Under the pieces are notes generated by a model. The model did not search any database, was not told the DNA's origin, and was given only the letters and a program-made list of their open reading frames with translations. From Trichosphaerium sp. ATCC 40318 (Eukaryota; Protista; Tubulinea): 64,000 nt of DNA. The stretch is from positions 36,627 to 100,626 of the forward strand of contig JALMLS010000387.1 in assembly GCA_038496445.1 (NCBI GenBank). The letters are read 5' to 3'. This document shows positions 16,581 through 46,081 of this stretch, piece by piece. The translations under genes and the position numbers were made by a program. Within the stretch, counting starts at the first letter, position 1; each line of letters opens with the position of its first letter.

Positions 16581-16923
16581 TACCGCAGAGTAATAATCGG
16601 AATAGTGATTTGTAGGTTGCCTTAATGAACTAGTTAAGGACAGGAAACAAGTGCATTTAAACCTAGAGTGGGCGCTCAACTGCAATCTGCTGTCTCATTC
16701 AAATACAATTGGCTACACCCGCGAATCAGATGCCAAAAACTACAATACTGTACAAATGTTACCAATCATTGTACTATGTGCTTAATCAACAAGTTCACGT
16801 GAGTTTTCAAAAATTTGAAAAAAAATACCAAACAGTTTGTTGTTGTTGGTAATTTATTATTTGACTCTAACTAACTACTCCTGGTTTACTATTTTGTTTA
16901 CAAAAAAAATACTGTACGACTTT

Positions 16924-19712: not shown

Positions 19713-19950
19713 TTTTAGGGTAACAAGTGAGATTCTGTCCTATTATTGTTCAAAAACGTACGTAGCAAGATCTGCAGAAGTACGAAGCATGTTCACTACG
19801 GGTTCAGTTAGTATTTTTTGTCAATTAAAAAGTAGACTTATTCCCAAAAAATTATCACGTGGCTACCTCTGATTGCGCTAAGTCAGTATACAAAACTATG
19901 AACTCAATTTCCACGTGACTAACGATTGCGTCAAACTACTGTTGGTTGTT

Positions 19951-21861: not shown

Positions 21862-22737
21862 ATGCCAACAGAGAGCACAAAATCCAGTACTGATAAAAAT
21901 CAAGTGTCCAAAACCTGCAACGTTCCCAGCAGAATCACAATTTTATCGAGTGAAGATTGTGTGAATTATTCAGGAAGTCCTCTTCTTCGCCAGTCAGAAA
22001 TCTCATTGGAAGAATTTCCAGATGCAACAGATGAAGATCTCGCTCTTCTCTCTGGTGTTAAACGCTTGACACTGTGCAAAAATAACAAAATAACGAGTAC
22101 AGGACTCAGTGCAGTGTGTGGAGTAGAATATCTTAATTTGTGGTATTGTCCAAATGTTACTGATTCAGGCATATTCGCAATAGTAAAGCACCTCAAATTA
22201 ATTAGCATGGTGGGTACAAGCGTTACAGACAAGGGCGTGAAAGCGTTTAAGGGAATAGCAACAGTTGGTCTACCACACTCCAAGTTAAGCGGAGATACTT
22301 TCTCAGCCTTGTCTGGTGTTTCTTATCTTGATCTATATTCTGCTCACCTCAATAACAATGGCGGAATCTCAGCACTGACTGGAATACATACCGTTGATTT
22401 AACCAGAGCAACATTTACAGATGAATGTGTCGCAGCGCTAGCTGGAGTACATACCATTAACTTACAAGATACGATGGTTACAGACAAAGGTGTAGCGGCT
22501 TTAAAGGGCGTACACACTATCAGTCTCAAATTTTGTAAACGTATCAATGGATCTTGTATGAAAAGTCTTGCGAATGCTCACACTATTAACATTTCACGAA
22601 CAAATGCAAGAGATGATTGGATCCTTCCACTTACCGGTGTACACTTGTTAATAATGAACTATTGTCTAGACGTGTCTTTTGAAGCTATGCAAACAGTTAG
22701 AAACTATGGAGGAGAAATAGAATGTTGCTATGGATAG
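21862..22737 (+). CDS. LRR protein of the same GVHTI family, no clear F-box
   Basis: 291-aa ORF with LAGVHTINLQDTMVTDKGVAAL repeats. Confidence 0.85.
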   Translation: MPTESTKSSTDKNQVSKTCNVPSRITILSSEDCVNYSGSPLLRQSEISLEEFPDATDEDLALLSGVKRLTLCKNNKITSTGLSAVCGVEYLNLWYCPNVTDSGIFAIVKHLKLISMVGTSVTDKGVKAFKGIATVGLPHSKLSGDTFSALSGVSYLDLYSAHLNNNGGISALTGIHTVDLTRATFTDECVAALAGVHTINLQDTMVTDKGVAALKGVHTISLKFCKRINGSCMKSLANAHTINISRTNARDDWILPLTGVHLLIMNYCLDVSFEAMQTVRNYGGEIECCYG

Positions 22738-24291: not shown

Positions 24292-25078
24292 TTATTTGTA
24301 AAAAGCATGTTTGCGTATTTGTCCATCACATGCCCACTCCCTGTACCATCCGTCCAACATGCCATTTTTAGAATAAAAGCAATGTTTGTGTAGTACGTTA
24401 TTATAGTGCCACTCCATGTACTCACCTGTCAAGCAACCTTTGTTGTAAAAGCAGTGAAGTACTAAATCACTGTCACGCCACTTTTTGTATTCTCCGTTTA
24501 ATTCACCTTGTGAATAAAAGCAACGTTGGAGCAATGTATCTGTACCGCCCATCCACTCCTTATACTCACCATCTTTTTTGCCGTTTGAGTATATGCATTG
24601 TTCAAGTGGTAAACCAGATTCATGCCATTTATTGTACTCTCCAACCAATCGGCCTTTAACATAAAAACAAATCAAAAACAGTTTGCCGTTGTCATACCAT
24701 TCTTTGTACTCTTTGCTTAACTTGTCTCTGGCATACGAACAATGTACTTTCAATTGTCCGTTTCTTAACCAGTGCTTGTGAACGCCATGACGTTTGCCAT
24801 GTTTCCAAGAACATTTACGGAGAAGCTTCCGCGTGTTGTTTTGACAATGAAGTTGTTTCATCACACACCATGCTTTCTGAGCTTAGAATCAAACCTTGTC
24901 GTCATCGCCATGTGTTTTGATAACAATGGCCATTTATAAAAAATGTCAGCGGCTAAATCAGTAATACAAAGGTGTAGCTCCACTGGGAGGTTGTGCAGGT
25001 GACTAAAATCAATGCTGTCCTTATGTATCTACTATCACGTTATAAAAATAAAAGATACACGTGTACTACCTTTTCCAT
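24292..25078 (-). pseudogene. F-box + MORN-variant (YwqK-like) repeat protein with a 1-nt frameshift; paralog of 53991-54626
   Basis: LHNLPVELHLCITDL..KWPLLSK..TTRFDSKLRKHGV, frameshift at ~24865, then GEYKEW..NG repeats. Confidence 0.7.
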
Positions 25079-25431: not shown

Positions 25432-25503
25432 AGGCTCCACCCGGAGTCGAACCGGGGTCACATGTACCAAAAACACGTATGATAACCGTTACACCATGGA
25501 GCC
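25432..25503 (-). tRNA. tRNA-Gln(UUG)
   Basis: GGCTCCA/TGGAGCC acceptor stem, anticodon arm CGTGT-TTTTGGT-ACATG, T-arm CCCGG-TTCGACT-CCGGG, downstream T-runs. Confidence 0.93.
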
Positions 25504-25907: not shown

Positions 25908-27290
25908 TTATTCGTTTAGTAGGTCATCATCACAGATAGAAGGTTGGGTAGTCTCAGGACCTAAAACAATACCATCCACGATATTGTTGATGAACACACC
26001 ATACTGATGGTGAGCATTTGCAGCGGTCATGCCTTCGGTGGATAATACAGGCATAGTAGGAAGGGTAAATGTCCCGAAAGGCATATCAAGCGTCATTGGA
26101 TCATGAAATTGCTCTACATCCATACCAATAGTGAGAATATCGACAACGAAATCCTCTTCATCTGGGAGAGTAGGTGCAACAAGGTCATCATCACTGTTTA
26201 CAACTACAAAGGTAGTCAGTAAAATAAAAAACAAAAAAAAACAAGATTGCAAAAAAAAAAAAAAAATTCGTACCAAAAGGCATAGGAGGTTGTTGATTGG
26301 TGTTGTTGACGACTGGTAAAGATGGTAGTACCAAAGCTTCAGCGACAAAGCTTTCAACGTTTTGAGTGCACGTTGGAGGGTTTGGTGAAGCCTGAGCGCA
26401 GACGGAAGGAGGAACGTGAACCTTTGGTTCTTCTTTCACTTCGTTGATAGTACTTGGACTGTTGGCAGGCGTCCCGGAGACTGTTGGAAATAGCACAGTT
26501 GCTGGAGCGCAGGTTGGCTTCTTTACACGCTTGCAAGGTTTCGTAGTGGTGCGTGGAGCATCTTCTCGTTTGCGTCTTGCCCTACGGGCGACTGTAGGAC
26601 GAAGGTTGTTGGCGGCAATCCATTCTTTTAAATCCTTACTACGGCGGTTCCTATTGTTGTTGAACCAAGTCTTGACTCTTTCCCAGGTGATGTTGCAGAA
26701 GAAACCAAGGCGTTGTCTTTCGGCGAAGCTTGGGTATGGATCCTAATGATTGCAATGAGTACGAGAAGGCACAAAGACAAAAAAAACAAAGCGAAAAAGA
26801 AGAAAAAAATACTGAAACGTACTGTAGCGTGTTGAAAGAGCCAGTTTGTTAGGATGAGTGTAGCACGGTGAGAGAGAGTTTTAGAGGCAGCAGGGAGAGA
26901 AGCTACATTGTTGACCTCGTTTTGAATCATGGTGTACAGCCTGCTTTGTAGAAGAAGTCTCATCTGATTGAACTTTACGTCAAGTTGTTTGAGGTGGTTG
27001 TTCGTTTGTTGTTGAGTAAGAAACTCTGAAAGAGGTTCCTGAGAGGCTTCAAGCTTAAGGAGATGTACTTTCTCCTTGATGAACTTTTCAAGCTTGGCAA
27101 GCCTTGCCGTGTATTGAGTGAACATAAATGCAGCTTTCTCTTTGATGAGTTGAGAATCGAGAGCACTTCCAAATCTTTCAAAAACAGCTTTTTGAGTTAA
27201 CGGAGGTATGATTGATTCCATGAGACTCATATTACTAAGTTCTTTGTTTAATGCTTCCATAGGCGTATTTGGTAGGGCTTTGACTTCCAT
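25908..27290 (-). CDS. TALE homeodomain protein with PBC-B-like domain (class A, copy A1; 3 exons)
   Basis: Spliced HD: RATLILTNWLFQHAT|DPYPSFAERQRLGFFCNITWERVKTWFNNNRNRR (intron 26743-26822). Upstream KFNQMRLLLQSRL; Pro-rich linker and acidic tail. Confidence 0.9.
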
Positions 27291-28099
27291 GTTCGAGTTC
27301 TATTGAGGAGAGGAGTTGTTATCCGTGTGTAGCTTTGATAGAATAGTTTTTAGGCACAAAAACTTCAAAGATTTTGACCTTAAATGCCTCCTATTTCGGA
27401 CCAACCTCAACAACACCACGAATGGAATAGTGCAAGTGATTACTTATACGCCAATGTGTATATTACGCGTTTTGTTATCCCGTAATCAATCTAACAGTTT
27501 TCTGAACGCTAAGATTTGACTGGAAAATACGTAGCGAAGCAATGTGGTTGTTTGCGATGGGTTTTTGAGGTTAATGTTACCAACATTTTGGTGTTTAGAA
27601 AAGCGCTGTACTACTTCGTCATAAGCAAAAATGCGCATGCGTAGATGCTACATGGGTGTATGTACGTCCTATATACTTCGGGTACTAGAAGTTCCGTTTT
27701 AGGCATGTTTCGAAAAGAGAATTTCTTCCTTTGTGTGATAGTTTGTAGTCCCGTAATACAACACTTTTTAAAAGCTCTTTTTATCGGAAGAAACTGTAGT
27801 TATTCAATTTTGTCTGCGGTTCTTAATTAGGTCTGTTTTATCCTCAATGATATGCACTTAAACGTGTACAACGCAATCTACTATGCGCACAAACTGTTAG
27901 AGCTTTTTTGCTCAAATAATTATAAAATTAGTTCTACAACGCTAAAAACGTTCACTTTCGCTCATGACGGAGAAAGTGATTGAATTGTAAGTGATTGAAC
28001 AATAGTCATCGATCTTTAACATAAAAAGCAGAAATCTTTCAAATTCTATTTATTCATTGTCTATTATACATTATTTTTTCGTTTTTTAGCTTATCGCAA

Positions 28100-29763
28100 T
28101 CACAATAAAGCTAAATGAAGCTGAAGGGAAACTTCTTTGTTTTTTAACGAAGAAGCTTTACCCAAAGCGTCACGCCCAACTTCTAGAATTTCTTTATAAT
28201 CATTCACAACAGCTGAAGTATGTGTTAAAGTTTTGCCTAAAGCCTTAGAATCGGAAAGAAGTTTCTGTTGATCATCGATTATTCTTGTCGATTTTTGAAG
28301 CAAGACACTCGCTTCTTCAAGTTTTGTTCTCACCTGAGGCTGGTCTAACGTGACGTTATCACGTACTCTCATGATTTGAGCGACTTGGTTCACTTTGATG
28401 CTCATTTTTTTGTATTTTTCGAGACAAGCCGTTAATTCCTTTTCGAATGAGAATAGGTTTGTAGCTTGTACAGAAACAATAGAGTCACCAAACGCCTAAA
28501 CGGAAACTAAGCCTAAAAAGGGCAAAAATATATGATTGATTTTAAACAACAAAGAGAATTCTGTAGTTGTTTTCGAGAGTTGTTTTTTGTGGAAAACTCA
28601 CCTTTTGTTTGCTGTTTTCAAGCTCCGTTGATTGTTTTTTTAGTTGGGTACGAAGTTGTGAAACATTCTTTGACACTGCATAAATCTCGCCCTAAAGGTA
28701 GCATTAGTACGCAACTAGATTCGTAGTTGACGTACAAGGGTGTTTGCTGTATTCGCTTTTTTGGCGAGTGCTGCATTTTTGTTCATGAGTTGCCATTGAA
28801 GGAGTTGGGTTTGTAGAAGCTCTATACGCTTCATTTTGGTATCCTTAGACTTTTCCATTCCCATTCGGACTCGCTACAAAAAAAATAAATAAACATTCTA
28901 AAAACAAGTTGTTCCGGGCTTCTACACGAACAGAAAAAATTGAAAAAAATGCCACGCTATGCACATAATACTAATGTACTCATAGAAAACTTTTGAGCTT
29001 CAAACGATTTGATACAAACGCGCGAAAAATCGGTTAATAAAAATAGCATTTTAAATCCGAACGTACTGTCGTTAACTTTGAACGTTGCGGTTTGTTTTGT
29101 GCTGGTTTGGTAGTAGTATTGACTCTACGCTTTCTCACAACAGGAGTTTTTGTAAGAAAAGCTCTGGCCTGATTTCTCGCATTTTCACTTGCAAACGCGC
29201 TATTTCGTACTGGTTTGCGCTTCTTCATCGAAGAACGAAGCGTACCAGCTACTACCGGCTTTGGCTTTCGTTTGTGGGCCCAGTCACCTGTATGGCGGCC
29301 GATGAGTCGTCGTTTCAAAGCTTTGAGTTTAACGTACGTGTTATCATCGTTGCGCGTCTTCCATTTGGTGCTGGTTGGCGTTTTTGCAGAGCGGCAGGAA
29401 GCATTGTAGCTCTTCGTGTTTGTAGTGGCGGAAGTTGAGTAAGCGGCTTCCTGGTTTTCTTTGTGGTTGATGATGGTTGCATGTAACGTGAAGCAACATG
29501 TTTAACTACAATTCAGTGTGAGCAATTTTACCGTTATTCTTTCTTTACCTCTTCTACGTTTTGCTGTAGACGGTGCTGCAGTGCGTTTTGGTACAGTTTT
29601 TCGGTTATACGGCGTCTCAAGCAGAATATCATCAGTAGGTAGCCGTCGTTGCTTTTTTGCTAACAAATATAAGGTTTGAAGGTAGTTTTATTAGCGTTTT
29701 ACTTGTTGAGCTAAATAATCGCTTTTGAACTGATCCAAATGGCGTTTGCGAAGACAGAGACAT
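28100..29763 (-). CDS. Augmin subunit 8 (HAUS8/AUG8, QWRF-family)-like protein, multi-exon
   Basis: Basic N-terminus with VASRYMQ; coiled coil with LLQTQLLQWQLMN (QWRF-like), then EIYAVSKNVSQLR. Confidence 0.65.
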
Positions 29764-29931
29764 GATACAATCAACGCGGGAAACAAATCAAGTGGTGTTT
29801 TCAAACGAAGTCATTTTTTTTTATACAATTGGTTTATTGACGCATAGGTAGCCCATTTACATTTTTATGAGTATCATAGTACTCTTGTACAAGTAAGTGA
29901 TGAGCTAGCGTCGTCGCACGTGAAGGTTTTT

Positions 29932-30480
29932 TTACTCTTCGCTCTTCTTAGCGCGTTTCTTGTTCTTTTGTCTTTGCAATTCTTCCTCGGCCTTGCGCAT
30001 CTTGTACGCCTTCTTGGTATCTCCACGACGACGGCGGGTATTGGTGAACCATACGCTGATTTGATCAACTGATAGGCCAATATTTGCGGACATTTCTTGC
30101 TTCACTGTGAAGTCTGGGTACGGAAGAGGTAGATGACCTTGGTACCACGTGTCCATTGCCAATTTGGCTGCATCAGAGTGATTTGCTGGCCTATTATTTC
30201 CAGCTGTCGTTGGGATGTTAGGGTCAAGGTCTGTGTCGTAGTCATCAACTAAGGTGTCAGAGTATTCGCCAAGCGTTATAGATTGCGCTAACTCTGCTAG
30301 TTTCTCGTCGGTACCAGCCTTTAGAGCTCGTTGACGCTGTAAAGCTGCGGAATAGATTTCAACAAATTTTTGTTGAGCTTCTGGACTAGCGTTAATTTCG
30401 ACAGGGGCTATACTAAGAATGTCGGTGTGTTCGGTGAGGTTATCTAGTAGTGCACGGTGAACTTGTTGAGGTGTTGCCAT
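29932..30480 (-). CDS. Small intronless TALE homeodomain protein (class B, copy B1)
   Basis: RPANHSDAAKLAMDTWYQGHLPLPYPDFTVKQEMSANIGLSVDQISVWFTNTRRRR. ATG at 30480 (MATPQQ). Confidence 0.92.
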   Translation of the reverse strand: MATPQQVHRALLDNLTEHTDILSIAPVEINASPEAQQKFVEIYSAALQRQRALKAGTDEKLAELAQSITLGEYSDTLVDDYDTDLDPNIPTTAGNNRPANHSDAAKLAMDTWYQGHLPLPYPDFTVKQEMSANIGLSVDQISVWFTNTRRRRGDTKKAYKMRKAEEELQRQKNKKRAKKSEE

Positions 30481-31131
30481 TGTTGTTTGTTTGTATTTAA
30501 CTGATTTATAATAGGATTTCGCCTCGAAAAATTTGATACGAAAACTCAATAATCACTCAAGATTGAAAGACAATTATAGTTTACGCGTATAGATGGTAAA
30601 AAAGCCGAAAGATTCATATTTTGTTAAAATTCCTACTAAAGTTTATAATATCAATCATGTGTGGTACGCTGGCCTGCCTCTATAAAAGCTCTACATACGT
30701 TCTCTAAGAATTTCGAGTGTTATTTTCCGACTTACCTGTTTTGGAGAAAAGAGAAAATTATCTATCAATGCGCTTACACTACGCGCAAAATGTAGCATAT
30801 TTTATGATAGATAAATGTAAGTTGCGAAAAAAAAACTTAAAATAATCGCTTGTATACTAAAACACTGATATCGCTAGTCATGCGTAGTAGAACCATTACT
30901 CCCAGTTTCAAAGCGAACTAATCTGATTGATAGGAAATACGGAATCGCTTTCTGATGCTCCAGAAGTACATAAAATCGCTAAAAAAACACATTACGAATC
31001 GTAAAATTTGGTTTACATGTTAATTCTCCAAAAGTGGAACCAAGAATTTGGGTGGACGAGGGTTTTACCCCCAAATGCAAAGCTACACAAAAACAATCTA
31101 TCAACGACCTCAACCACTCCTTACACGACCA

Positions 31132-32494
31132 ATGGAAGAAAATAAGCAAAATCCACCTGTTAATCAAAAAGCAATCGATAAGCTGGCCGAAAGCTTCCAA
31201 AACGCTACGATAACGGAAATTCGTGACGTACCAGGAATCGTACCTCAATTGCAGCGAGCTCAAGTACTCTCGAGGTTCCCAGGAGTTACTTCAACCGAAA
31301 TTCTTGAACAGAAAATTTCGTGGCTGTTCTCGCAATATATTGGTGCTCTTACCAAACTCGAAGCTATTGTAGACGCAAAGGTCCAAAACCTGGCACGTGT
31401 ACTAGCCAAGCCTGGAGTCGCAAAGTTATTTCCAGAAGACTTAAAGAAACTCAAACTGCATGTGGTGTCGACTAAGTTCAATCCCGTGCGCATTGAGTAC
31501 CAACAAAGACTTTTCAAAGCCGTTACCGCCGAAATCGAACACCAAAAGTCTATTCCTGCAGATGGAAGAAGAATTCCTCATCGCGCGCAGCGTATTCTAA
31601 CCAATTGGCTCTTTGTTCACGCAGCAGTAAGTTATCAATCACGTATTTATTAAATGCTCACATGCTTGTTAGAACCCTTATCCTACCGAAGCTGAACGAC
31701 AAAAGCTTGCGTTTGTTTGTAATTTGACTTGGGCCAAAGTTAAGACTTGGTTCAACAACAACAGGAACCGCCGTCGCGAGGACTTGCAACAATGGCTTGT
31801 TGCTCGTGGCATCGTACCTGCTCCAAATGCACCAAGACGCCAAGCACGAAACGCCAACCCTGTAGCCAATCACGCTCCAAGACGAGTTAGAAACACCAAC
31901 CCTGTAGCCAACAATGCTCCTACTGCTGCCCCTCTCAACACTCCAACATCTCTAGCCCCTGTTGCGCGTAATACCGCTGTTCGTAACCCTAACCGTACTC
32001 GCAAGTTGAAGACGATTAAAAAAGAAAAGAAGTACGTCGAGGAAATATCTCATGAACCTCCTCAATCAGGTGCACTTCCTACACCGCCTGTACCAGCAGT
32101 CATCAGCAGTGCCAACGTTGTTTATCCTCGTACCAGTACGTTTGTCAGCAGTAGTTACAACACTTTTTCTTATTGCTACATAGCCACTTTTCCGCCAGAT
32201 ATTCTTACTGCACCTGTGCTCGAGCTAGGTAGTGCCTACATCGAACACGAAACCAACTTTCTCACCGATGGAATGATCCCAGCACTTGGTGGCGATCTAG
32301 CAATGCCCGATAGCACTTTGCTTACGTTTCAAGAGCCGCTAGAGATGCTGTTAAATCCAATGGGAGAATTCACAGTATCAGAAGATGTGAGGATTAACGC
32401 CAATGACGTAAATGAGCAAAATGCTACAGTACGCGTAGATGCCTTTGTGACTGGCCTCGTAGACAACTTTGTCTTTTATGATTCTGACATTTAA
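31132..32494 (+). CDS. TALE homeodomain protein with PBC-B-like domain (class A, copy A2)
   Basis: RAQRILTNWLFVHAA|NPYPTEAERQKLAFVCNLTWAKVKTWFNNNRNRRR (intron 31627-31672). KFNPVRIEYQQRL upstream; acidic tail. Confidence 0.92.
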
Positions 32495-33175
32495 TTGGTT
32501 TGTCCTATGTAACTCTCGAGCAATAAATTGTATTGAGTTAATTGCTCTTTCTTTTGTTTCATTTTAACCAACGCTTCCTATAGTATTCTTTGAAATACAC
32601 TATGGTTACCGTCTCTTGTAAAAGGTTGTCGTAATGTTGTTGAATGTGTTTGTAGGTTATTGAGGAAAAAACTGATCCTTGCTATGTTTAAAAGCAATTT
32701 TCGTGCCACCTACAATTTTATTGTCGTTATAAGAAGGGACTAGCATAGGCGAAAAAAGGAAATTGACTGACGTACGTTTATTCCCATTTAAACAATACAA
32801 TATTTTTGTGAGGGAGGCAAAGGCAGACTGTGCTGTTTTTCCGTTCCCAGTTTTTTACTGTTCTTCATCTGTAAGTCATAGTATTACTACGCATCCCACT
32901 GAACACACATTGCCATAGAAGGTGCCAGTGCAAAGAAAGGTTGTCTGGGTTCTAATCTGAAGAACCTTTGTGTACTAGTTGTGTTGTCGCTCTATTGGTG
33001 CTTTGTGGCTGAAATCAATGATGATAAGCCATTTAATTGCAGGTGGGCACGTGTTGCAGCAATTTGTACTCATGTTTAAAAATTCGCTTAAGCAACTGTT
33101 TTTGGATCAGCTAGCAAAACGTTCGAAAACTGTATGCGACAGTAGTGTATTTTAAGTCACTGCAATCTATAATAA

Positions 33176-33478
33176 CTAAGCATCTTGTGTACCAACTAGT
33201 TGTTTTGATGTAGTTGCAACTAGGATAGTATGTATATTCGATTCTATGTCTGTTGTACGAGCGTTGGTAAACCAGTCATACACTTGGTTAGTAGTCAGAC
33301 CAGATTGCTGAGCTATTCCATCGTATTCATCACCACTTGGGTATGGTTTTGGAATAAGGCGTTTAAACCATTGTTCCAACACTTTGATTGCAGATGGGTG
33401 AATAATACGGCCCCTTGTTGGTGCTCTTTTTTGGGATTCTATCGTTGTATGTGCTATCGTATCGGCTGAACATTGCAT
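33176..33478 (-). pseudogene. N-terminally truncated class B TALE homeobox gene (B2)
   Basis: HPSAIKVLEQWFKRLIPKPYPSGDEYDGIAQQSGLTTNQVYDWFTNAR. It lacks the family N-terminal region and the basic tail. Confidence 0.65.
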
Positions 33479-33964
33479 GGACCACCAAATTCTAATTCAG
33501 TACAAAATAGATTGGTGTTTGGCAAAAAAAAACGTGATGTGAAATTTGTTTGTGCACTAATGTCTTTTTGTGAACTAATTTCTATTGCACATAGCAATCG
33601 TTTGTTTTCTGTCTCCTTCAAAGCTTGTGCGACTGACAAATCAATGCATAACCAATTACATAGGTGCCGTCACCTCCCTACATGTGCATTTGTAATCAAT
33701 ATCTTGTTTCAATTCAGTCCAAAGCAGGTATCGCACGTGATTCTCAACTAATACATCAATTTGATATTTTGGAATGGACTGGTCAGCTCCTTAGTGCCAT
33801 CGACTTTCCTTCTACTGTGCATCGATCTGTGGTTATAAAGAAGAGAATGCCTGTTGGTGGCCAACTAAAAGGATGTAATAATATTATCATCAGTTACAAT
33901 CAAAGGTAAACATGAGATCATAGTTTATTGTTACTAATCGAACAAGTAGGACAGTACATAGGTT

Positions 33965-34498
33965 CTATTGTTCAGTTTTTACACGCTTGGCTTTGCTTTC
34001 TTCTTTTACTGAAGCCAATTTGCGTTTGTTTTCCTTGTGGGTATGTCCACGGCGACGGCGGGCGTTAATAAACCACACTCTAACTTGAGTAACACGTAGT
34101 CCGGCTTGCCTAGCGATTTGAATGTACTGATGATGATCTGGATATGGCTGTGGAATGCGAGGAGTGTACCAATCTTCCATGACTTGAATGGCATCTGCTG
34201 AATGATTCGCTGGACGATTGTGACCATTCGTATCAGGTATGGCAACATTGTAGGTGGTTTCGTAGTGGTGAATCATCCCTTGAAGGTCCTTAAGAGGTGA
34301 TTGTTCTTGATCGGTTGTTATCTCTTGCAAAAGGTTGGCAACAATCTTGTCACGTTTTTCAACAAAGTTGAGACACATTTTAGTGAACTTTTCAACGAGA
34401 GCTGAAGCGACGTGTGAGATATCAGGAGCAAATCCAATTACTTTATCGCCGTTGATCTCTACTAGCTTCTTGTATGCTTCAAATGCCATGTTGTTCAT
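33965..34498 (-). CDS. Small intronless TALE homeodomain protein (class B, copy B3)
   Basis: RPANHSADAIQVMEDWYTPRIPQPYP..GLRVTQVRVWFINARRRR. Start at 34498 by alignment with B4. Confidence 0.92.
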   Translation of the reverse strand: MNNMAFEAYKKLVEINGDKVIGFAPDISHVASALVEKFTKMCLNFVEKRDKIVANLLQEITTDQEQSPLKDLQGMIHHYETTYNVAIPDTNGHNRPANHSADAIQVMEDWYTPRIPQPYPDHHQYIQIARQAGLRVTQVRVWFINARRRRGHTHKENKRKLASVKEESKAKRVKTEQ

Positions 34499-34568
34499 GT
34501 TGATGATGAGGTGTTGTTGTTGTACTGTTGCGATAATAATGATTGTTTGAGTGTACAATATTAGACAA

Positions 34569-34596
34569 CCAAATTCTAATTCACTGTTGATTGGTT
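34569..34596 (-). promoter_or_regulatory. Conserved upstream element of class B genes, containing a CCAAT box
   Basis: AACCAATCAACAGTGAATTAGAATTTG is 26/27 identical to 36070-36096 and lies ~70-100 nt upstream of both ATGs. A variant occurs at 33485-33516. Confidence 0.55.
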
Positions 34597-35458
34597 TGCT
34601 TCTATTTTTATATATTTTCCTTTCCATTTGATAGACGAATACTATCAATCTATACATATTATTGATGGACTTATTTGGATCAACAGAGGTGAGCGGTTCG
34701 AAAAAATCAATCATCACTGAACAAAAACAAACTTTTTTCTTGAGCAGAAACTGAGCTTTCTAGCGTTTACTACCAGGTACATTGCTTGCTAGTTTAAAGT
34801 TTAGCCTAACTCTAACAAATATTCAATATAGACAACAACGACATTGTGGCATAGTTCGTATACGCTCAGAAAGTTCACAAAGGAACGCTATCAATCTGAA
34901 TAAAACAAAATCTCAAACCAATCACCGCTGATCGAAAACAGCTTTCACTCACAAACTGGAAAACGGAATAATATCAATCTATCGTCGACCTGATAACCAG
35001 CAATTGTTTTGTTTACAGAAACATGTAAAGCGACTGGTACAAAAGAGTCGTAGGTCTTAAAACCGCGTCGGGGGAACAAAATGAAATCATTTTACGCAAA
35101 GATAACCTCTTTTAGTCGAAAACAACAAAAAACAGCTTTCGGAGGTCGGTTTACAGTATTGAAGGGAAATACGTAACAACAGAACAGTTTGTTCGGTAAC
35201 GAGAGCAATCTTGCGTTCTTGCAATTCCAAAACGAGCATGTTTTGAATTTTTGCGTTTTACATCCTTACCCGACCTGGGAAGGATATCTACAAGCTACCA
35301 GAGGTAGCCGAGAATACATATCGTACATTAAACACTCTGTAAGGTACCGAAAAGAGAAATAAAAAAAGAACTCGAGAAAATACAGATTAGGCGATTTTAA
35401 GATACAAAATATTCGTTTTTATTAATTTGACAAGGGTTGTAATAGATAAAAGAATACA

Positions 35459-35998
35459 TTATTCGTCTGTATCATTCTTTGCTCGTTTTGCATTTCTTTT
35501 TGCTTTTTCAGCTTCCATTTTACGTTTGAGGTCCTTCCTTGTATGTCCACGGCGACTGCGTGTGTTAGAGAACCATACTCTTACTTGAGGAATAGATAGC
35601 TGCGCATTTTCAGCGATTTCGACTATTTGGTGGCGATCTGGATAAGGTAGTGGAAGATGTAGGGTGTACCAAGATTCCATTACTTGAATTGAGGCACGCG
35701 AATGAGCCGCTGGGCGAACGTTACCTTTTTCGACAGGTATAGCTGGGTTATAAGTGTTTTCATACTGGTGTAGCATCCCGTTAATGTCGTTTAGCGGTGA
35801 TTGTTCTTGGTCTCTTGCTATTTCTTCCAGAAGGTTGGCAACACTTTGTTCACGTTTTTCTACCAAGTCGAGGCAGGAGAAAACGTATTTCTCAATGGTG
35901 GCTGGGTCAATGTGTGATATATCAGGTGCATCACCAATTACTTTATCGCCGTTTATTTCTACTAGTTGCTTGTATGCTTCGAATGCCGTGGTGTACAT
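35459..35998 (-). CDS. Small intronless TALE homeodomain protein (class B, copy B4)
   Basis: RPAAHSRASIQVMESWYTLHLPLPYP..QLSIPQVRVWFSNTRSRR; tandem paralog of B3. Confidence 0.92.
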   Translation of the reverse strand: MYTTAFEAYKQLVEINGDKVIGDAPDISHIDPATIEKYVFSCLDLVEKREQSVANLLEEIARDQEQSPLNDINGMLHQYENTYNPAIPVEKGNVRPAAHSRASIQVMESWYTLHLPLPYPDRHQIVEIAENAQLSIPQVRVWFSNTRSRRGHTRKDLKRKMEAEKAKRNAKRAKNDTDE

Positions 35999-36069
35999 GT
36001 TGATGAGGTGTGGTTGTAGTGTGATTGATATTATATTGATATTTTTTGAGTGTAAAAAGTTGAGGTGGT

Positions 36070-36096
36070 CAAATTCTCATTCACTGTTGATTGGTT
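36070..36096 (-). promoter_or_regulatory. Second copy of the class B upstream element
   Basis: AACCAATCAACAGTGAATGAGAATTTG, 1500 nt from the B3 copy, the same offset as the two ATGs. Confidence 0.55.
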
Positions 36097-36970
36097 CTGA
36101 TAGATTTTTCGCCAATCGAGTGACACTATTATGAGCATACACTGTAAACAACGAAATAGCATTGCGGCTGTACAGGTATAGCCAGTTTAATCTCAAACTG
36201 GAACAGCTTTCGGACAAATATTAAATTCACAAAACTAACAATGAGCTAACAGCGTGCAAACATACGCTCATGTAGTTTTTAGAAAACATCGAGAGCGATT
36301 TATGAGATATCAATCAAACTCAATCAGCACTGAATTTGTTCCTTCTAATCGCTCACTTCGTCGTATCAATCTACGAGTTCACATTTTGAATATACTTTTA
36401 AAAAAAGCGCTATCTTTTGAAAAACCAATCTATAGTACAAAATACGCGTTGATGGATAATATACGAACGTTCTACAGTATATATAAGCACCTTGAATTCG
36501 TTGTAAAAAAAAATACAACCCACACAGTAATGTTTATGTCTGGGTCCTGTACTAGCAAGCTACGAATATTTTCGTTCGTGGGAACCTTTTTGGGAGTTGT
36601 TTACGCCAATTCCAAAACGAGCAAGTTCCGATTTCTGCATTTTACGTCCTTTCCGTACGTGAACAGAATTTAACAACAAAGGTACCGTTCGATAAACAGG
36701 TTTCCGGCGCAAAATGCAGCATAAGGAATTTTGTTATTTTAAAACATCGATACAGACACAGTTTACCTTCGAGGCGTACTTCTAGTAGCATAGAAAGCTT
36801 TAATACGAGTAAACTGTTAGATGGTTACAAAACTAAACAAAATCGCTAAACGAGTGCATCTACGCCTAGGGATACCATAACACAAAACAGAACATTATAA
36901 ATCAAATATTTAATTGTCATTACTTTTTTTTTGTACAATACCGCTGCCGCGGCGCCATAGGCACAAGAGC

Positions 36971-37492
36971 TTACTTCTTCTCTTGTTTGGTTTTTTGACG
37001 CTTGGCAGCTTCTTTCGCTGCTTCTTCCTCGCGTTTACGCTTAGCTCTTGCTTCCTTGATACGAGTACGCCTGTTCTGAAACCACAAGCTTACTTGCCCT
37101 TCCTTTAAACCGCACTCAATAGCGATAATCTTCTTTTCTTGAGCTGTAATATAAGTTTTCTTGTTGTACCATTCCATTAGATAGTCAACAGTATCTTGTG
37201 GATGATTTCTTGGACGTCTTCTACGAGGTGGAGGAGGTAGGTTTTCACCAGTTGCCTCATTGTCGAATTGCTCATACAACACGTCGTCTTGGCCGAGTCC
37301 AAGGTTGGCTATCATACTTTTGATCATGTGTTCTGATTCAGCATCGATGGCAGATTGTTCGTGGATTGATAGTGCACAAACTTGTTGCACTTCAAGGCTG
37401 TTAATGTCACCCAAGGATTCTGCGTCAAATTCAACGGTTTCGGATGTATTCATTGTAACCATTTTCTCTATCATTGTGGCTGTTGTTGTCAT
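36971..37492 (-). CDS. Non-TALE (60-aa) homeodomain protein, intronless (class C)
   Basis: RRRRPRNHPQDTVDYLMEWYNKKTYITAQEKKIIAIECGLKEGQVSLWFQNRRTRIK; no 3-aa loop extension; Q50. Confidence 0.92.
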   Translation of the reverse strand: MTTTATMIEKMVTMNTSETVEFDAESLGDINSLEVQQVCALSIHEQSAIDAESEHMIKSMIANLGLGQDDVLYEQFDNEATGENLPPPPRRRRPRNHPQDTVDYLMEWYNKKTYITAQEKKIIAIECGLKEGQVSLWFQNRRTRIKEARAKRKREEEAAKEAAKRQKTKQEKK

Positions 37493-38107
37493 TTTTGTTG
37501 AGAGTTGTTGTTTCGACTGTTTGATTTGTGAATTATGATTTCTACGCCCAGAAATTTAATAAAAATTGAATTGTTCTTCACGTAATACGCTGGAAATACC
37601 TATCAATCATAACCTTGCCTGATCCAAATCAATCTGAAATACGTTTAATCGAAAGCGAACAATGTGTCTGAACGACTTCAACGACTATAAAAATGTATAA
37701 TAAAGAAGAAAGCTAAAAATCACTTTTTTTTTTTCTACTCGTGATAGAATATCTGTGTCAATCAGAACTGCGGTAAACCTAAATTAAGCTTGAATTCCGC
37801 GCGTGAAACATACAAAAGGTATAGCACCGCTTTTAAAAAGTTTAGCCCGAAAATGCAAAGAATAAATGCAAGGCCTATAAACAATAACTAGGCGCGTGTT
37901 GGGAAAGTAAAGCAGTCTAAAGTTGCTTCTTTACAAAAGTAACAACATTATTCCAAAAAAGGCAAATTTTGAATTTCCACTTGTTTTATTTGGAATAACA
38001 GTTGTTAAAGCGTAAAAAGACAAGCAAGATGCATCAAATTACTTCTGCGTAGTACTTTGGTACAGTTTTGCTTTGATATAATCTATCTAATCGATCTAGG
38101 TAGCTGA

Positions 38108-39372
38108 ATGGACCAACCAGCATCTGTTGCGCTCATAAAGCAACTGCTTGCGGCGGTTAAATCAGTTCCAGGCAATATAGAAATTGTTCAGCCGCTTGTG
38201 AAAGATGATATACCCGGAATGCTTAACGGCGAACTACATAATCCAGTACTTCAGGAAAAGTTCGATTGGCTTTTCGATAATTACATTGAACAGCTCGGTA
38301 ATGTAGAAAAGGTGGCAAGGAAAAAAGTCTGCAAACTCAACGAGCTACTTTCTGATGCAGTAACCTCACAATTCTTCACACCTGAAGAAAAAAAGTTAAA
38401 ACTTCTTACTGTTCTCTCAAAGTTCAATGCACCTCGACAAAAACTACAGAAACTACTTATAGATGCACTAAACAAGGACATCAAAAGGGTGCCTTGTATT
38501 AAAAAAGATGCTGACACGAGAGCGAGAGCAGTTATCATTGATTGGCTTTTGGAAAACTCGGAGGTACAATTTTTTTTGCATAGTTTTATTTTTTGTTCTC
38601 GCTGTTCTCTTACCTGTGTCCTCCGCAGAATCCATACCCTACGGATAGAGAGAAGAAAAAGGTAAGTATAACTTGCATTTCTAAAGCCAGAAGCTCATGT
38701 ATGGGTTAGCTTGCGTATTGTAGCAATATGACATTTGCCGCTACAAAAAAAAAGATTGGTGCAATCAGAAACAAACGAAAAAAACAGTTAACGGAAGTGA
38801 ACAAGAAAAAGAATAAAGAACTTCGGCCAATAACCAAAGCTGTTGTATGGCCTGAAACAGATCCTTGTACACTCACAGAGGAAAACAAGCTCACTGTACC
38901 TCTAAGAGAAGAAACAGGTTTTCTTATACTACCATCAACTCCTTCTACAGAATCGTTTACGTCCTTATCTACAACGTCTTCTACCCTACACACATGTACA
39001 CCAACCGAAGAACTTACATATAACACATACGAGATCCTTGAAGCGCCAATACCAGATCAGGAATTGCCTGAAGGTAGAAGTCAATAGTTTTTTTTGGTTT
39101 TTTTTTAACGTGATTTGCTAGACAACCATAACAGCTTCACTGAGGTTGAACAGAATATATTTTGCAGTGATGAATGGTTAGACTCTTCACATGACACGTT
39201 AGAAACATCTGATAACACAAAACCTCTCTTCAAAGAAGTGTCAGATTCGCTATCAGATACGTTTGTACTAGGCTATGTTAGCGAAATTGCGCTTGATGAA
39301 GGGCTTAATACAGAAACTGACAACATGAACATTGAACACGATACAACAATGAGCGATTTATGGTCTTTGTGA
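38108..39372 (+). CDS. PBC-B-like TALE protein with a degenerate recognition helix (class A, copy A3; 4 exons)
   Basis: RARAVIIDWLLENSE|NPYPTDREKKK|LAYCSNMTFAATKKKIGAIRNKR. KFNAPRQKLQKLL upstream; acidic tail. Confidence 0.8.
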
Positions 39373-40077
39373 ATGACTCCCTAGCAAGGCGCCAAATGTA
39401 CATTTAGAAGAATAAAAGAGAGACTGAAATTTATTTTAGCTTTTATTAATTGTAAAACCCGTGTCGTTGTGTTCTAGACGTACAGAAAGTACATTGACGA
39501 GCGTAGGATCACCAATACCTTGGTTGTTGTAAGTTGCGAAAACGAACTCCAAAAAAGGAGAATTTTTATCTTAGCTTTTACTACGCTCAGTTGTTGCTGT
39601 GTACAATTAGACAAGACATTTAGTATTTACGAGTAGGCTTCATTTATTTACGCGCCATATAAATGCAAACTACAAAAAGTGCTATTATAAGAACATTCAG
39701 ACGTTTAGATTGACGAGGAATTTCAATCTTGCAAAGTGATTGCAAAAATGGTGAAAGCATAAATAAAAACAAACTATTCGCATAGATATCATTCGCATTG
39801 TCTTAACACTCGCGTATAGCGTCTGTCGGAGATGTTAAAATATATTTAAAAAAAACTTGTTTTATCGTCCTTCAAACACATCAAAAACCAAATTTATGCA
39901 AAAAGAACGTCAGCAAAAGAGTTATTCCTAATATTTACGAATTTTCAATAGTGAGTGCAAAACGTGTGAATAGATTTGGGTTGATATTAGGTTTTTAACT
40001 ACCCAAATTCTAGAACGAAAAAGAACATTAATCAAAACTCACTCAAACAACAAGCACTCAAACAACAAGCAACAAAA

Positions 40078-41350
40078 ATGGATGAAACTAACCACAACTC
40101 TATCACCAGCATTATAAACAGACTATCAGAAGTTTCAATCGCTCCAAAAGAAGAACACATAGTTCGTGTTGTTTCTTTGAACGACTTGATAATGCGATTC
40201 AATCGTCAGCTTACTACCCAACTTATCCAAGAAAAAGTCGATTATGTATACAGCCAATACCTTTTGTCTGTTAATAGCCTTGAAGCTATGGTAAGAACCC
40301 GAGTGGAAAGACTTCGTGAAATGCTTTCTGAAGACGAGGTCAAGTGTCTCTTCACAGTCGACGAAATCAAGATAAAACTGCATTCAGCTTCTTGCAAGTT
40401 CAACTCTGTACGTTTGGCATACCAAACCAAACTCTTTGCAGCTGTTGGAGCAGAGATTGCAAGACTCGCTACTTTGCCAACACACAAAAGAATTCCAGCA
40501 AGAGCAAAACGTATTCTCGTCAACTGGCTCTTCACCCACGCTGAGGTACGATTTTTATACAATTTTTTCACTCAAGTCGTAATTCTTGGTTGCAACTTTC
40601 TTCTTACATTCTTTTCTCTAGAACCCATACCCTCGCTTGGATGAAAGAAAAAGACTCGCTTACTACTGCGACTTGACCTGCTCTGTAGTCAAAACCTGGT
40701 TCAACAACAACAGGAATAGACGTCATGAAGATCTACAACAATGGATTGATGATGGAATGAACCAAGCAAACCCTGCTGTCACCCCTGTAGCCCCACCTAC
40801 AGCTCCTACAACTGCGCCGGCTCCTTCAGTGACTCGCGTTCCAGTTGTGCCTACTCCTACTCCAGCACCTGCTCCTATTGTAGCACCTGCTCCTTTCGTT
40901 GTACCTACTCCAGCAGCTGCTCCACCAGTTGTACTTGCTCCAAGACAAGCAGCTCCTCGCCCAGTAGTACGAGCACAACAACTTGCCCCAAGACAACATA
41001 GCGCACCTACCTCAACTAACCCTCAGCGTACGTCAAACTACTTCTATTAATCAATGTTACCTAGTACTTATTCCTTTTTTGTAGCTGCTAACGCACCTTT
41101 CGCAATGTACATCCAGCCTGAAGTTAACATGTTGACTGACGGCATGCCTGGATATCTTCACGCACCTACTGATGATGAATTGATGCCTCCTGTTTTCAAT
41201 GGTGCCATGTTACCTAGTGATTCTTTGGATGTTGAAATGCCAAACCAAGTGACGCCACAAAATGTCGATGACCTGCTTGCAGACTTTATCGATGATGCTG
41301 TAGATGTATATCTATTCGCAGACTTGGAACCATTCAACCTAAACAACTAA
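40078..41350 (+). CDS. TALE homeodomain protein with PBC-B-like domain (class A, copy A4; 3 exons)
   Basis: RAKRILVNWLFTHAE|NPYPRLDERKRLAYYCDLTCSVVKTWFNNNRNRR (intron 40546-40621). Pro/Ala linker and acidic tail. Confidence 0.92.
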
Positions 41351-41867
41351 TCTTATAAACCGAAACGTCCAAACCAGAAGAACAGAAAAAACACCAAAAA
41401 ACTTTACATACTTTTGTCTCATCAACAGCACAGAAATACAAATCTCGTTGCTCTCTTACATTGAAAAATCTTTAATAAAGTACCCATTAGTATCATACAT
41501 CGTAATTAATCATCAATCACATTATTACTGATAATAAAGAAATACCATACTACGAATTAGGGCACATGATAATCCAAAAGGTCACTTTGTATGAAATCAA
41601 TCTATATCAACGAATCAATCTAAGTACACACTTGTTGGCTGATAGATATTTGTAATCAATACTAGGGTTACCCTAGAAAAGATAATCAATCTGGTAACGA
41701 TAAGGGGAGGGGTCACTTGAAAAATGAAACGTGATGTTGGAGTTTAAAAAAAACTATTGTATACTTTTATTCACATTATTATAAATACAATCAAAGGCGT
41801 TCTTATGTACAGACACATCAAAACCTCGGTTTATGTCCTTTGCGTGTCAACTGTTATTACTACAGAA

Positions 41868-44446
41868 TCAACGTTTTCTACCTCTACCTTTCCTCCTTGG
41901 TCTTTTTTTAGGAGAAGTCGTAGAGTTACCAACATTTGGGTTCGATAGAGATACAACTTGTCCTTCTTTGATCTCTTTTTGGTCCATAGCTTCTATTTTA
42001 TCTTTTGCTTCAATATAAAGCATCAAATCACGAACTTGCTCCTAATAAAAGTGAGTTTAGATAACAACAAACGCCGAACACTAAAATTAAATATAAAATC
42101 AGTCTGTGAGCTTAAAAAGAGCTATGTATGATTCTATAAACGCCTCAATGCTATTTTCGAAAACCCAAACGTATTTAGAGGTACGCCAAGGAAGAAAAAT
42201 GCAAAAAAGCGGAAAAATGAATTAAAAACGTTTTTTCAGTACCTGCAACTCCTGAATTTTCTTATCTTTATCCACATCGTTATCAACCTCTCTAGCTTTC
42301 AAGTATTCTATCTTCTTACGATACTCATCTTGATTTTCTTGCATTGCCTTATTGACATTTCGTAAAAACTCAGATTCTTGCATTAAATCATTCATCTTCT
42401 TCTCCAAGTCCTTTGTACGGCATTTTAAACGTTGTTTTTCGCTTTCAACAGTTTGTAGACGCTTTGCGCAATCTATTTTCTGACCAAGCAGTTGGGCATA
42501 CTGATCCTCCATAAACGCTAGTTTACCGGTTTTCTGGTGATGCACCATTGCTAGCTGCTTTTCGAAGTAGTCTCGCTGTGTTTCGAGCTGCGCTGTAAGA
42601 AGGTAGGAGTACTCCAAGGATAGAGCATCTAGCTTACCCTACAAATGATTTAGACAGAGTTTGGAAAATGTATCGGGCGAAGAAAAGTCTGGAAAATCTC
42701 TAGAATTCTTGATTTCCACTACGCGTACCATATACTCCTTTCCTTTAGCCTTAGAGTACTTTGGATCTTCTTCACCGCTCATTCCAGGGTCCGGTAATGC
42801 GATTAATTTACCGTCAGCTTCATTTCTGACAAGTCTACAAAAAAAATCAGAAAAACTGCTATAAAACTGAATAAAAGTATCGCAAACACTACAAAGCATT
42901 GAGTGCTCCACAAACATGCACAAGAGTTCAAAAAAATTCTACAAAAAGCCATCTACGCGTACCTATGCACGTAGCCATCACTAGTATAATCCCAGACACG
43001 TTGCGTTTCCAACTCGAGTGCATAAGTATGTCTGCTTTGCTCGAAATGTTGAAAAGCGTGAGAGTTAACATAGCGTCCACAACCCACGTGACCACATACT
43101 AAGCATATCCAAAGAGCCTTTGACGAACCACAACCATGGCATTGAGTCTTTGAACCATTTGGTTGTTGAACATGACGACAAACTGGACAAGAATTATCTT
43201 CTCGCCACTTCCTTAGGCAGTGGCAATGAAAGTAGTGATTGCATAGTATAGTAACAATACCAGTTGCTGAACCATCCAATCGCTCTAGAATACACGTTGG
43301 TAAGCATTAATCACCAAAAAATAACAAATGTTTTTTGCTTTTTTTTGTGGATTAAAATGAATGTCTCCTGACGATTGTCGCGTACTTGCCCTTAATTGAC
43401 AAGCACACTGAAAGATACGCTTTAGGAATTTTTTATTGCTCCTTGGAGGCTGTGACACCGATTGAATTGCGGCGCACACGGTTTAAGAGCTTAAAATAAA
43501 AAAAACAAAAAAAAATTGTACCTAAGCACACCGGACACGTTGGTAACTCCTTTTCCATCTGATGTGGGAATATAGATGACTTTGAGTCAACAAAGTCAAC
43601 TCCTTTAGCAAACACTGGATAAGCTACTTCATCACCCTGTAAACAATAAGTCAGAATACCCTCAGAGGTGTCAAAATGTGTCAAATGACATTTTCGGATA
43701 AAAAACCCAGAAAGGCTTAATTATTTAGATTTTGGGCATATTAACGCCCCTCATGACTCAAAATACTGTCAAGTAGGGGAGCTGGATATCCCGTATTACG
43801 TTTTTTTCGCATTTATGAAAAAAAAAACTGATCACATGTTCATCACGTGAGAAGTAACTTACCAGTGAAGAGAATTCTTTTCCATAATAATGAAGATAGA
43901 ATTCATCAGCATGCTTTTGCTCTCTAAAATTAGCCAATACCATGTAACGTTGACTTGATGCATCACTAGTGAGGTAAAAAAGTCAGCCAAAATGAATTTC
44001 AGGTGACGTCATAATAACTGGGCGAATTGACGTGAATCAAAGCTATTCTCATACCTCAATACGCGCATGCCATCCATGTCTGCTATAAATGCTCCACACC
44101 AAGTAATAAAATCAGCAACCAAAATATAACTCGGTACTGCGAGTATTAGGATCAATCGTGAAGTTAGCTTCTAATTTGCTGCGGTTAGCGAGGATTTGAC
44201 AAGAAATAACGGTAAATGCCGTTTATAACGTACAGGAAGTTTACCGCGCTCATGTACGATACCATGCGCTTCTGCATCTCGCAATAAATGAATCACACCC
44301 TTAGTAATATGCACCGAAGGGTTTCCTGCAAAAAAATGGACAGTGCTACCACACACACCATTAGAACTCGTTTGATCTTTTTTAGGTGATTGGAGCGCCA
44401 TTGCTTCTGTTTTAGGGTCTTCACACTGTACTACCACTGAGAACAT
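41868..44446 (-). CDS. BRAP: BRCA1-associated protein 2 (BRAP2/IMP/ETP1) E3 ligase, multi-exon
   Basis: GNPSVHITKGVIHL, ELPTCPVCL, RING CNHYFHCHCL..W..CPVCR, ZnF-UBP LWICLVCGHVGCGRY..HA, QRVWDY..DGYVHR, EYSYLLTAQLETQR.YFE, EQVRDLM. Confidence 0.95.
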
Positions 44447-45306: not shown

Positions 45307-46081
45307 TTAGTCTACAGATACTTTTGTTCGGTTCTTATGTATTGGTGTATTGGTGTACCCTTGTCCCCAAACGTAGTATTGAGGTGATGATAAAATAACG
45401 GGGTTGAACTGTTTTTTATCATCTACGCTTTGACGGTTTTGCGTAGCAACATGCATTGGTGGTAGTCTCGCTAATGGAGGGAGAATATCATATTGGGTAT
45501 GTGTACGTTGAGGACAACAGTTGATTACCATATTAGGTGTTGAGCCAGTAGATAGCTTTAAGACGCCCTGACTGATTAGACTAGCAATAGAAGGTAGTAT
45601 TGGTTTATAAAAGCAAACCTTTGACTCCAATTTCCATCTATACAAGATTAGCAACACCTTTTCATATCCCTCCGATTTTGGATTTGACGTACTTGTCTTG
45701 TGAAATAAGCTTATTATTGTGCGTTGATGATGCTTTTTTCTTTGTTGGTTTAGCATGATTATGGTCATGGATGTAGCAAACGTCTCTATAACATATAATA
45801 TCAGTATCTGACGTATTTCTAAGCAGAAAAAGTAGCAAGTAGACGCACATAAAAGTGTTGTTTTCGCTGTTTTGTTGAACGTGTTTCTTCGCTGGGCAAG
45901 AGCGTAGAGCACAACGATAGTACGTGCGCTTATTCTGTGATGCTTTGAGTACGCGATTGCCAATGTTACGCCACTTCCAACCGTCGCAAGTTGTCTTGTA
46001 TTCAGCGCGTACTTGTAGCATACGCATGTTTGTAGAATTGTATTCAAAAGAGCCTCTCATCTGTCTTGTTTGATTATTCAT
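45307..46081 (-). CDS. Divergent WRKY-domain transcription factor
   Basis: DGWKWRNIGNRVLK..RTYYRCALRSCPAKKHVQ. Removing a 63-nt intron (45786-45848) yields ..CYIHDHNH, giving a C-x4-C..H-x-H zinc finger. 3' exons uncertain. Confidence 0.8.

Follow-up and report, generated by a model that had tools for sequence, protein, structure and literature searches.

A TALE homeobox gene cluster with a high density of PBX-type sites in the amoebozoan Trichosphaerium

The HD1/HD2 loci of basidiomycetes, such as the A locus of Coprinopsis and the b locus of Ustilago, hold two classes of homeoprotein encoded by divergent gene pairs, with several paralogous pairs in each locus. In another group of systems, which includes GSP1/GSM1, KNOX/BELL and ORO/SAM, a TALE protein with PBC homology acts with a second TALE partner, and such dyads have been proposed to be an ancestral haploid-to-diploid switch and an ancestral signal of gamete fusion in eukaryotes (PMC6219170). 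Where the complement of a unicellular eukaryote is known it comprises one TALE gene of the PBC type and one of the MEIS/KNOX type (PMC4053784, PMC4901127), and single-celled organisms usually have fewer than 12 homeobox genes (PMC4901127). Acanthamoeba has 25, including one PBC and one MEIS gene (PMC4053784), and the only amoebozoan PBC/MEIS pair that has been tested did not interact (PMC3957477). Here we describe a cluster of nine homeobox genes, found at positions 25908-41350 (~15 kb) of a 64-kb stretch of DNA from Trichosphaerium sp. ATCC 40318 (hereafter the window). No mention of homeobox genes in Trichosphaerium was found in the literature, the genome paper included (PMC10521059), and no paper was found on homeodomain mating-type genes in Physarum or in Amoebozoa beyond Dictyostelium.

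The cluster is a TALE homeobox family arranged as a cluster, to which the present analysis adds the density of a PBX-type site in its non-coding sequence. Its genes fall into two families, termed here class A (A1-A4) and class B (B1-B4 together with C), and we consider it reasonably probable that two lineage-specific homeodomain families have here been expanded in tandem into an array with auto- or cross-regulation, its likely role being the control of cell state or of the life cycle. Gene models were made by linking open frames via GT-AG introns with the frame kept, and these, with the two divergent promoters, are as follows:

A1: 27290-26823, 26742-26274 and 26203-25908, minus strand; three exons, TALE, 410 amino acids; N-terminal domain PBC-B-like, C-terminal tail acidic
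B1: 30480-29932, minus strand; intronless short TALE gene, 182 amino acids, Pfam Homeobox_KN at E 1.2e-10
Divergent B1/A2 promoter: 30481-31131, no strand; 651 nt from ATG to ATG
A2: 31132-31626 and 31673-32494, plus strand; two exons, TALE, 438 amino acids; the intron, of 46 nt, lies in the TALE loop
B2: 33478-33176, minus strand; truncated, homeodomain-only member of the B family, 100 amino acids
B3: 34498-33965, minus strand; intronless short TALE gene, 177 amino acids, with WFINARRRR
B4: 35998-35459, minus strand; intronless short TALE gene, 179 amino acids, tandem duplicate of B3
C: 37492-36971, minus strand; B family, 173 amino acids, with a 60-residue non-TALE homeodomain containing WFQNRR, Pfam Homeodomain at E 9.7e-12
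Divergent C/A3 promoter: 37493-38107, no strand; 615 nt from ATG to ATG
A3: 38108-38563, 38629-38661, 38710-39073 and 39122-39372, plus strand; four exons, class A, 367 amino acids
A4: 40078-40545, 40622-41027 and 41085-41350, plus strand; three exons, TALE, 379 amino acids; linker rich in Pro/Ala, tail acidic; repeat family D2

A sequence-only reading of this DNA had proposed nine homeobox genes in the same order and on the same strands, and the gene models confirm it. No further homeodomain was found in the window by a six-frame scan for a W-F-x-N-x-R helix, and a permissive tblastn search of the window with all nine proteins found no decayed homeobox relics. Two pairs of genes, B1/A2 and C/A3, stand head to head and account for four of the nine genes, the other five lying in same-strand runs; the gaps between their start codons, which had been put at ~650 and ~615 nt, come to 651 and 615 nt. 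The three-residue TALE insert, counting back from W48, is present in A1-A4 and B1-B4 and missing in C, the homeodomain being 63 residues long with xxx-PYP in the former and 60 residues long with TYI in the latter. Overall identity between A proteins is 25-39%, and that among B pairs is 60% for B3/B4 and 19-35% for the rest, from which the homeobox paralogs of the cluster are judged to be old. Despite a paralog identity of 25-40%, seven of the nine genes retain all key homeodomain residues, and the nine as a whole are intact or nearly so.

When k-mers were counted in the non-coding sequence of the cluster and compared with the rest of the window, the top k-mer by far was ATCAATC, or GATTGAT on the opposite strand, with 17 non-coding cluster copies against 0.78 expected. 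In the window as a whole GATTGAT occurs 24 times against 9.95 expected, a count of at least 24 being reached in none of 100 shuffles, and 21 of the 24 copies fall within 27210-41685, which makes up 23% of the window (binomial P 5.6e-11). The consensus of the site is WGATTGATW, represented in the cluster by ten copies of TGATTGAT and nine of AGATTGAT, and most copies precede the ATG of a homeobox gene by 25-500 nt:

27485-27491, plus strand: GATTGAT site (as ATCAATC), at -195 to the A1 ATG
28534: GATTGAT site at -1244 to A1, beside the interposed non-homeobox gene
30650 and 30925: GATTGAT sites of the B1/A2 promoter, at -170 to B1 and at -207 to A2 respectively
34644-34979: four GATTGAT sites, at -146, -208, -392 and -475 to B3; extended repeat family D5
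36023-36371: three GATTGAT sites, at -25, -311 and -367 to B4
37602 and 37628: two GATTGAT sites of the C/A3 promoter, at -110 and -136 to C
41512-41691: four GATTGAT sites (WATCAATCW) within 180 nt, 3' of A4 and before the BRAP2-like gene

The sequence TGATTGAT that is enriched in the cluster is the tandem PBX1 core (TGAT-TGAT) obtained by site selection, and self-association of PBX1 is mediated by PBC-B (PMC6426973). The MEIS-type site TGACAG has a single copy in the cluster (27000-42000), the rest of the window having 23. It was considered that the GATTGAT sites had been copied along when the genes were duplicated, and this was rejected, as the sites of B3 and B4 are not spaced by 1500 nt and have different flanks; their positions show what appears to be a motif that turns over instead of being inherited by duplication.

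Two other elements were observed in the promoters of the cluster. Five of the six window copies of ACTACGC lie in the cluster (30778, 30882, 32886, 38047 and 39580), four of them upstream of the class A genes A2, A3 and A4 and one (32886) just downstream of A2; of the divergent promoters, B1/A2 contains two copies and C/A3 one. There is also an inverted pair, ATTTGGG...CCCAAAT, at 31046/31070 and again at 39974/40002, the starts of its two halves being 24-28 nt apart. It precedes by 60-105 nt the ATGs of A2 and A4, which are closer to each other than any other two A paralogs, and it may be a conserved promoter element.

Class A proteins consist of an N-terminal region of ~145 residues, a TALE homeodomain, a low-complexity linker and an acidic, hydrophobic C-terminal tail, the last of which aligns weakly between paralogs. 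All four genes have a phase-0 GT-AG intron at the same place inside the TALE insert, between H-A-x and N/D-P-Y-P. When single A proteins were searched against Pfam the N-terminal domain had no match even at E 10, and none of the four reaches any PBC score. When a profile built from the first exons of the four genes was run with HMMER against 1.84 billion representative proteins, it gave exactly one match (E 7.7e-4), to a protein of the amoebozoan Paradermamoeba levis that has Pfam PBC above threshold and a canonical PBX homeodomain; this sole match bears out the suggestion made from the DNA that the host is an amoebozoan. Comparison of the A profile by hhalign with a set of 15 PBC proteins of protist and animal origin gave a probability of 96.7% (E 3.5e-10) over 108 columns that span PBC-B and helix 1 of the homeodomain, and after the removal of all homeodomain residues the PBC-B match still had a probability of 90.7%. 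On these profile comparisons the N-terminal domain of class A is identified as a distant PBC-B domain.

The MEIS-binding part, PBC-A, was not detectable in class A, the alignment to PBC beginning at position 52 of the A profile. Residues 1-51 matched nothing in the profile comparison with PBC proteins, and the first 50 residues form the least conserved stretch of the A alignment. The AlphaFold model of the A2 N-terminal region has a confident helical domain (pLDDT 85-93 over residues 60-140), for which Foldseek found nothing better than E 0.4 in the PDB. To our knowledge no structure of a PBC domain has been solved, which would account for the blank Foldseek result.

The C-terminal half of the A2 homeodomain has its top score among TALE structures with Extradenticle/PBX. 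Helix 3 of class A reads TWFNNNRNRR, the PBC-type recognition helix (NWFGNKRIRYKK, with G50) being absent; where PBX has WFGNKRIRYKK class A has WFNNNRNRR, and it differs also in the possession of an acidic C-terminal tail. In the homeodomain tree the four A genes form one clade (97/99 support) on a long branch. Taken together, the PBC-B profile match, the separate long-branched homeodomain clade and the non-PBX helix 3 indicate that the A genes are PBC-derived yet highly divergent. The sequence-only reading had called them four spliced PBC-type genes, of which the splicing, the TALE homeodomain and, by profile, PBC-B have stood, whilst PBC-A, a Pfam PBC score and a PBC helix have not.

In its layout class A resembles PBX/Exd and the Paradermamoeba PBC protein, in both of which the insert of the TALE homeodomain is followed by NPYP and PBC-B homology lies directly upstream of that homeodomain, and it shares with AcPbx of Acanthamoeba the lack of PBC-A and a homeodomain that has diverged greatly (PMC3957477). 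Acanthamoeba, however, has a single PBC gene (PMC4053784) where the Trichosphaerium cluster has four diverged A paralogs. One of the four, A3, has a degenerate helix 3 (KKKIGAIRNKRKK) in which W48, F49 and N51 are lost, and its PBC-B-like domain and its open frame of 367 codons across four exons are intact. A homopolymer sequencing error was considered as the source of this helix and rejected, since the other frame across the run of nine A at 38745-38753 is also non-canonical, reading DWCNQKQ with the W shifted by two residues. In A4 the Pro/Ala/Val-rich linker is encoded by imperfect 18-nt repeats (40805-40941).

The proteins of the second family are shorter, B1, B3 and B4 (~180 residues) being made up of an N-terminal domain of ~95 residues, a conserved R-P-x-N-H arm, a TALE homeodomain and, at the end, a basic tail resembling a nuclear-localisation signal. 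Pfam Homeobox_KN was matched by B1-B4, at E 1e-8 to 1e-11 in B1, B3 and B4. They had been described as four small intronless TALE genes, which is upheld by the Homeobox_KN matches and the TALE insert and has to be qualified for B2, a truncated gene with a homeodomain only. The model of B4 has a mean pLDDT of 70, and the N-terminal domain of the family is predicted, with moderate confidence, to be helical. Searches of Pfam at E 10 with the N-terminal halves returned only noise, with no MEIS-A/B, KNOX1/2 or ELK; hhalign of the B N-terminal domain with PBC proteins or with the A N-termini gave a probability below 1%; and no relatives were found in a word-indexed homology search with B4 alone or with the B-family alignment, nor in a scan of viral contigs with that alignment. 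A metagenome scan gave ten loci, all of them homeodomain-only matches of 27-51% identity in which the B N-terminal domain was unmatched. For B1, B2, B3, B4, C and three neighbouring intronless genes no exact record was found in public assemblies or protein collections. From these searches class B appears to be a lineage-specific short family with an orphan N-terminal domain.

Among solved structures the homeodomains of B3 and B4 score best with MEIS1/2 and PKNOX1, and that of B1 with Exd/PBX and then MEIS. Position 50 is I in B3, which has the helix WFINARRR, and T or S in B1, B2 and B4. Class B differs from MEIS/PREP/KNOX proteins in the lack of detectable MEIS-A/B, KNOX1/2 and ELK domains, in its length of ~180 amino acids and in the rarity of TGACAG in the cluster, and the label "MEIS-like" would seem to be justified only in part. 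A tandem duplication of 1500 bp relates B3 and B4, whose similarity extends ~110 nt upstream of the ATG, with a dN/dS of ~0.30 at a dS of 0.92; omega is ~0.25 for the N-terminal domain as against 0.35 for the homeodomain and tail. By this estimate the N-terminal domain of B3/B4 is under purifying selection no weaker than that on the homeodomain.

The two remaining members of the family depart from this plan. B2 is without the N-terminal domain and its helix 3 ends in WFTNARTTD, the basic end being lost; it shares with B3 a proximal upstream element of 20 nt (95%). The homeodomain of C has its best matches with those of the engrailed type, and C had been taken for a separate, non-TALE gene. The TALE insert is indeed missing, but BLASTP matches C to B1 over the whole length of the two proteins (E 2e-12, 27% identity across 181 positions), the alignment being gapped where the TALE loop lies. 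This puts C in the B family as a member without the insert, which in turn makes both head-to-head pairs B-family/A-family. As to the proposal of two homeoprotein classes, two structurally different, interleaved families and two head-to-head pairs have been found, C being no third type. Both C and B2 sit on long branches and are unplaced in the homeodomain tree and in that of the B family, and these trees do not settle whether the TALE insert was lost in C or gained in B.

The dense PBX-type site, whose enrichment is the new finding of this analysis, points to a candidate self-wired array. It is suggested that class A arose from the amoebozoan PBC (PBX) class and would supply a PBC-B oligomerisation domain and an acidic tail of the activation type, whilst class B would contribute a small homeodomain module, in which the residues that contact DNA vary, together with a basic tail. 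The products of the array, either as A-A complexes formed via PBC-B or as A-B complexes, would bind WGATTGATW in their own promoters, nearly every one of which has one to four copies, and would regulate their own and each other's genes. The outcome could be a feedback-stabilised switch that leads into a cell-state or life-cycle programme. The binder of the site, the pairing of A with B and the programme that is controlled are what we infer. In other TALE systems isoforms that are homeodomain-less or homeodomain-only act as dominant modulators, and A3 and B2 could be either such modulators or decaying genes.

Several observations weigh against the proposed self-regulating array. At the specificity positions 47, 50 and 54 class A has T/N/N where PBX has N/G/I, so that recognition of TGAT by A homeodomains is only assumed, and in the homeodomain tree the A homeodomains lie outside the canonical PBC group. 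The Acanthamoeba PBC protein, which also lacks PBC-A, failed to bind a PBX site in vitro (PMC3957477). The four sites at 41512-41691 are downstream of A4, where they have no gene to serve and where no homeobox relic was found. Furthermore, no exact site was found upstream of A4 or B2, A4 having the variant TGATTAAT at -51.

The array could instead be a mating-type locus of the basidiomycete HD1/HD2 type, multi-allelic and concerned with self/non-self recognition, in which A and B proteins of a single haplotype would not pair, whilst those from different haplotypes would pair after fusion and start the diploid or next-generation programme, the paralogous pairs serving to multiply specificities. 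Two homeoprotein families in one locus with two divergent A/B pairs are what would be anticipated, and C/A3, in which a TALE partner with a degenerate DNA-reading helix faces a partner with a typical homeodomain, is a further likeness to those loci. The weak conservation of the first 50 residues of class A would be in keeping with this, as would the acidic A and basic B tails, which make the functions look complementary, and the common bidirectional promoters, which predict co-expression of A and B as in the basidiomycete model; moreover the assembly was haplotype-reduced with Redundans, and very diverged alleles would have stayed as separate contigs (PMC10521059). Yet only four of the nine genes are in divergent pairs, the rest being same-strand tandem copies, B1 and A2 are both TALE, and the sequence relation to the basidiomycete proteins is limited to the homeodomain. 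The omega of ~0.25 for the N-terminal domain of B3/B4 is a pattern unlike that of a fast-evolving recognition domain, and neither of the canonical contact domains, PBC-A and MEIS-A, could be detected. In Acanthamoeba the PBC protein, which has no PBC-A, did not interact with its MEIS partner (PMC3957477), and cultures of the sequenced isolate, kept for six years, showed neither gametes nor cell fusion (PMC10521059). Of what was tested here, the architecture alone speaks for a mating-type locus, which we hold to be decidedly improbable. Very improbable, in our estimation, is the fuller version of it, a multi-allelic self/non-self compatibility system in the style of HD1/HD2 that evolved independently or was retained in Amoebozoa, and in which compatible A-B pairs would activate their own genes via TGATTGAT and drive the disputed gamont/schizont alternation of Trichosphaerium.

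It also seems quite unlikely that the cluster is a non-polymorphic zygote switch of the GSP1/GSM1 kind, with KNOX/BELL and ORO/SAM as further examples, where A and B would be made in different gamete or cell types and would meet only after fusion, as a heterodimer that enters the nucleus and activates the next phase of the life cycle. The PBC-B homology of class A fits such a switch, dyads of a PBC-homology protein and a second TALE partner having been put forward as ancestral and as linked to the haploid-to-diploid transition (PMC6219170), and in Trichosphaerium an alternation of generations has been reported, though disputed, and the set of meiosis genes is full (PMC10521059). The A and B proteins are not in the public protein collections searched, which fits stage-restricted expression, or the data of the organism are simply absent there. 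The known systems, however, have one gene per class, unlinked and expressed in different gametes, whereas here nine linked genes, far in excess of such one-plus-one dyads, have promoters in common; the short bidirectional B1/A2 and C/A3 promoters with the same sites predict co-expression in one cell and not in two cell types, and class B is without a detectable MEIS/KNOX domain. Unlikely too is a birth-and-death family without collective function, made up of fast-evolving tandem duplicates of which some (A3, B2) are decaying and in which the motif is an ordinary promoter element of the family. The plain 1500-bp tandem duplicate B3/B4, the truncation of B2, the loss of the DNA-contact residues of A3, the presence nearby of F-box/LRR genes as another fast-evolving tandem family and the lack of relatives of either family elsewhere in the searches would all be accommodated by it. 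It is harder to reconcile with the key homeodomain residues held by seven of the nine genes, with the constant intron position of the A genes, with the dN/dS of 0.30 for B3/B4 and with the frame of 367 codons over four exons and the intact PBC-B domain that A3 keeps; and the motif is a known homeodomain site that appears to turn over and not to be inherited with the duplicates.

The surroundings of the cluster are as had been proposed with regard to the two flanking genes, tRNA-Gln and BRAP2, both of which were found, and not with regard to the gene between A1 and B1, for which the label AUG8 has no support from Pfam:

25432-25503, minus strand: tRNA-Gln, flank of the cluster
27900-29700, minus strand: gene interposed between A1 and B1, outside the array; its 5' exons are basic and rich in Ser/Thr/Pro, and its 3' exon, at 28100-28405, encodes a coiled coil
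42953-43279: BRAP2-like gene with RING and zf-UBP, flank of the cluster

The G+C content of the window is ~38%, and that published for the Trichosphaerium genome is 37.69% (PMC10521059). Beside the homeobox array there is a second tandem lineage-specific family, an island of intronless F-box/LRR_6 genes (15273-22737) with four ORFs of 291-470 amino acids. Two MORN-repeat-variant genes, at 24292-24864 and 53937-54626, stand one on each side of the cluster, ~30 kb apart. The ORFs at 50842-51276 (plus strand) and 60884-61375 (minus strand), ~10 kb apart, encode closely similar proteins with the common stretch LLRSMIMSSFLFSSLIHDTYFHSSWVTISKSED, and may be a dispersed repeat or a duplicated gene. 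Finally, the ORF at 45662-46081 (minus strand) has a zinc-finger signature like that of WRKY/GCM1, YYRCALRSCPAKKHVQ, and may encode a transposase-derived or WRKY-type DNA-binding domain.

With the Trichosphaerium cluster there is now an amoebozoan whose PBC-derived family has expanded next to a second, short homeodomain family, both being apparently wired to their own promoters by way of a PBX-type site. It is a locus at which TALE pairing, autoregulation and life-cycle control can be examined together outside plants, algae, fungi and animals, and it could open a molecular approach to the life cycle of Trichosphaerium, which has been in dispute for a century.

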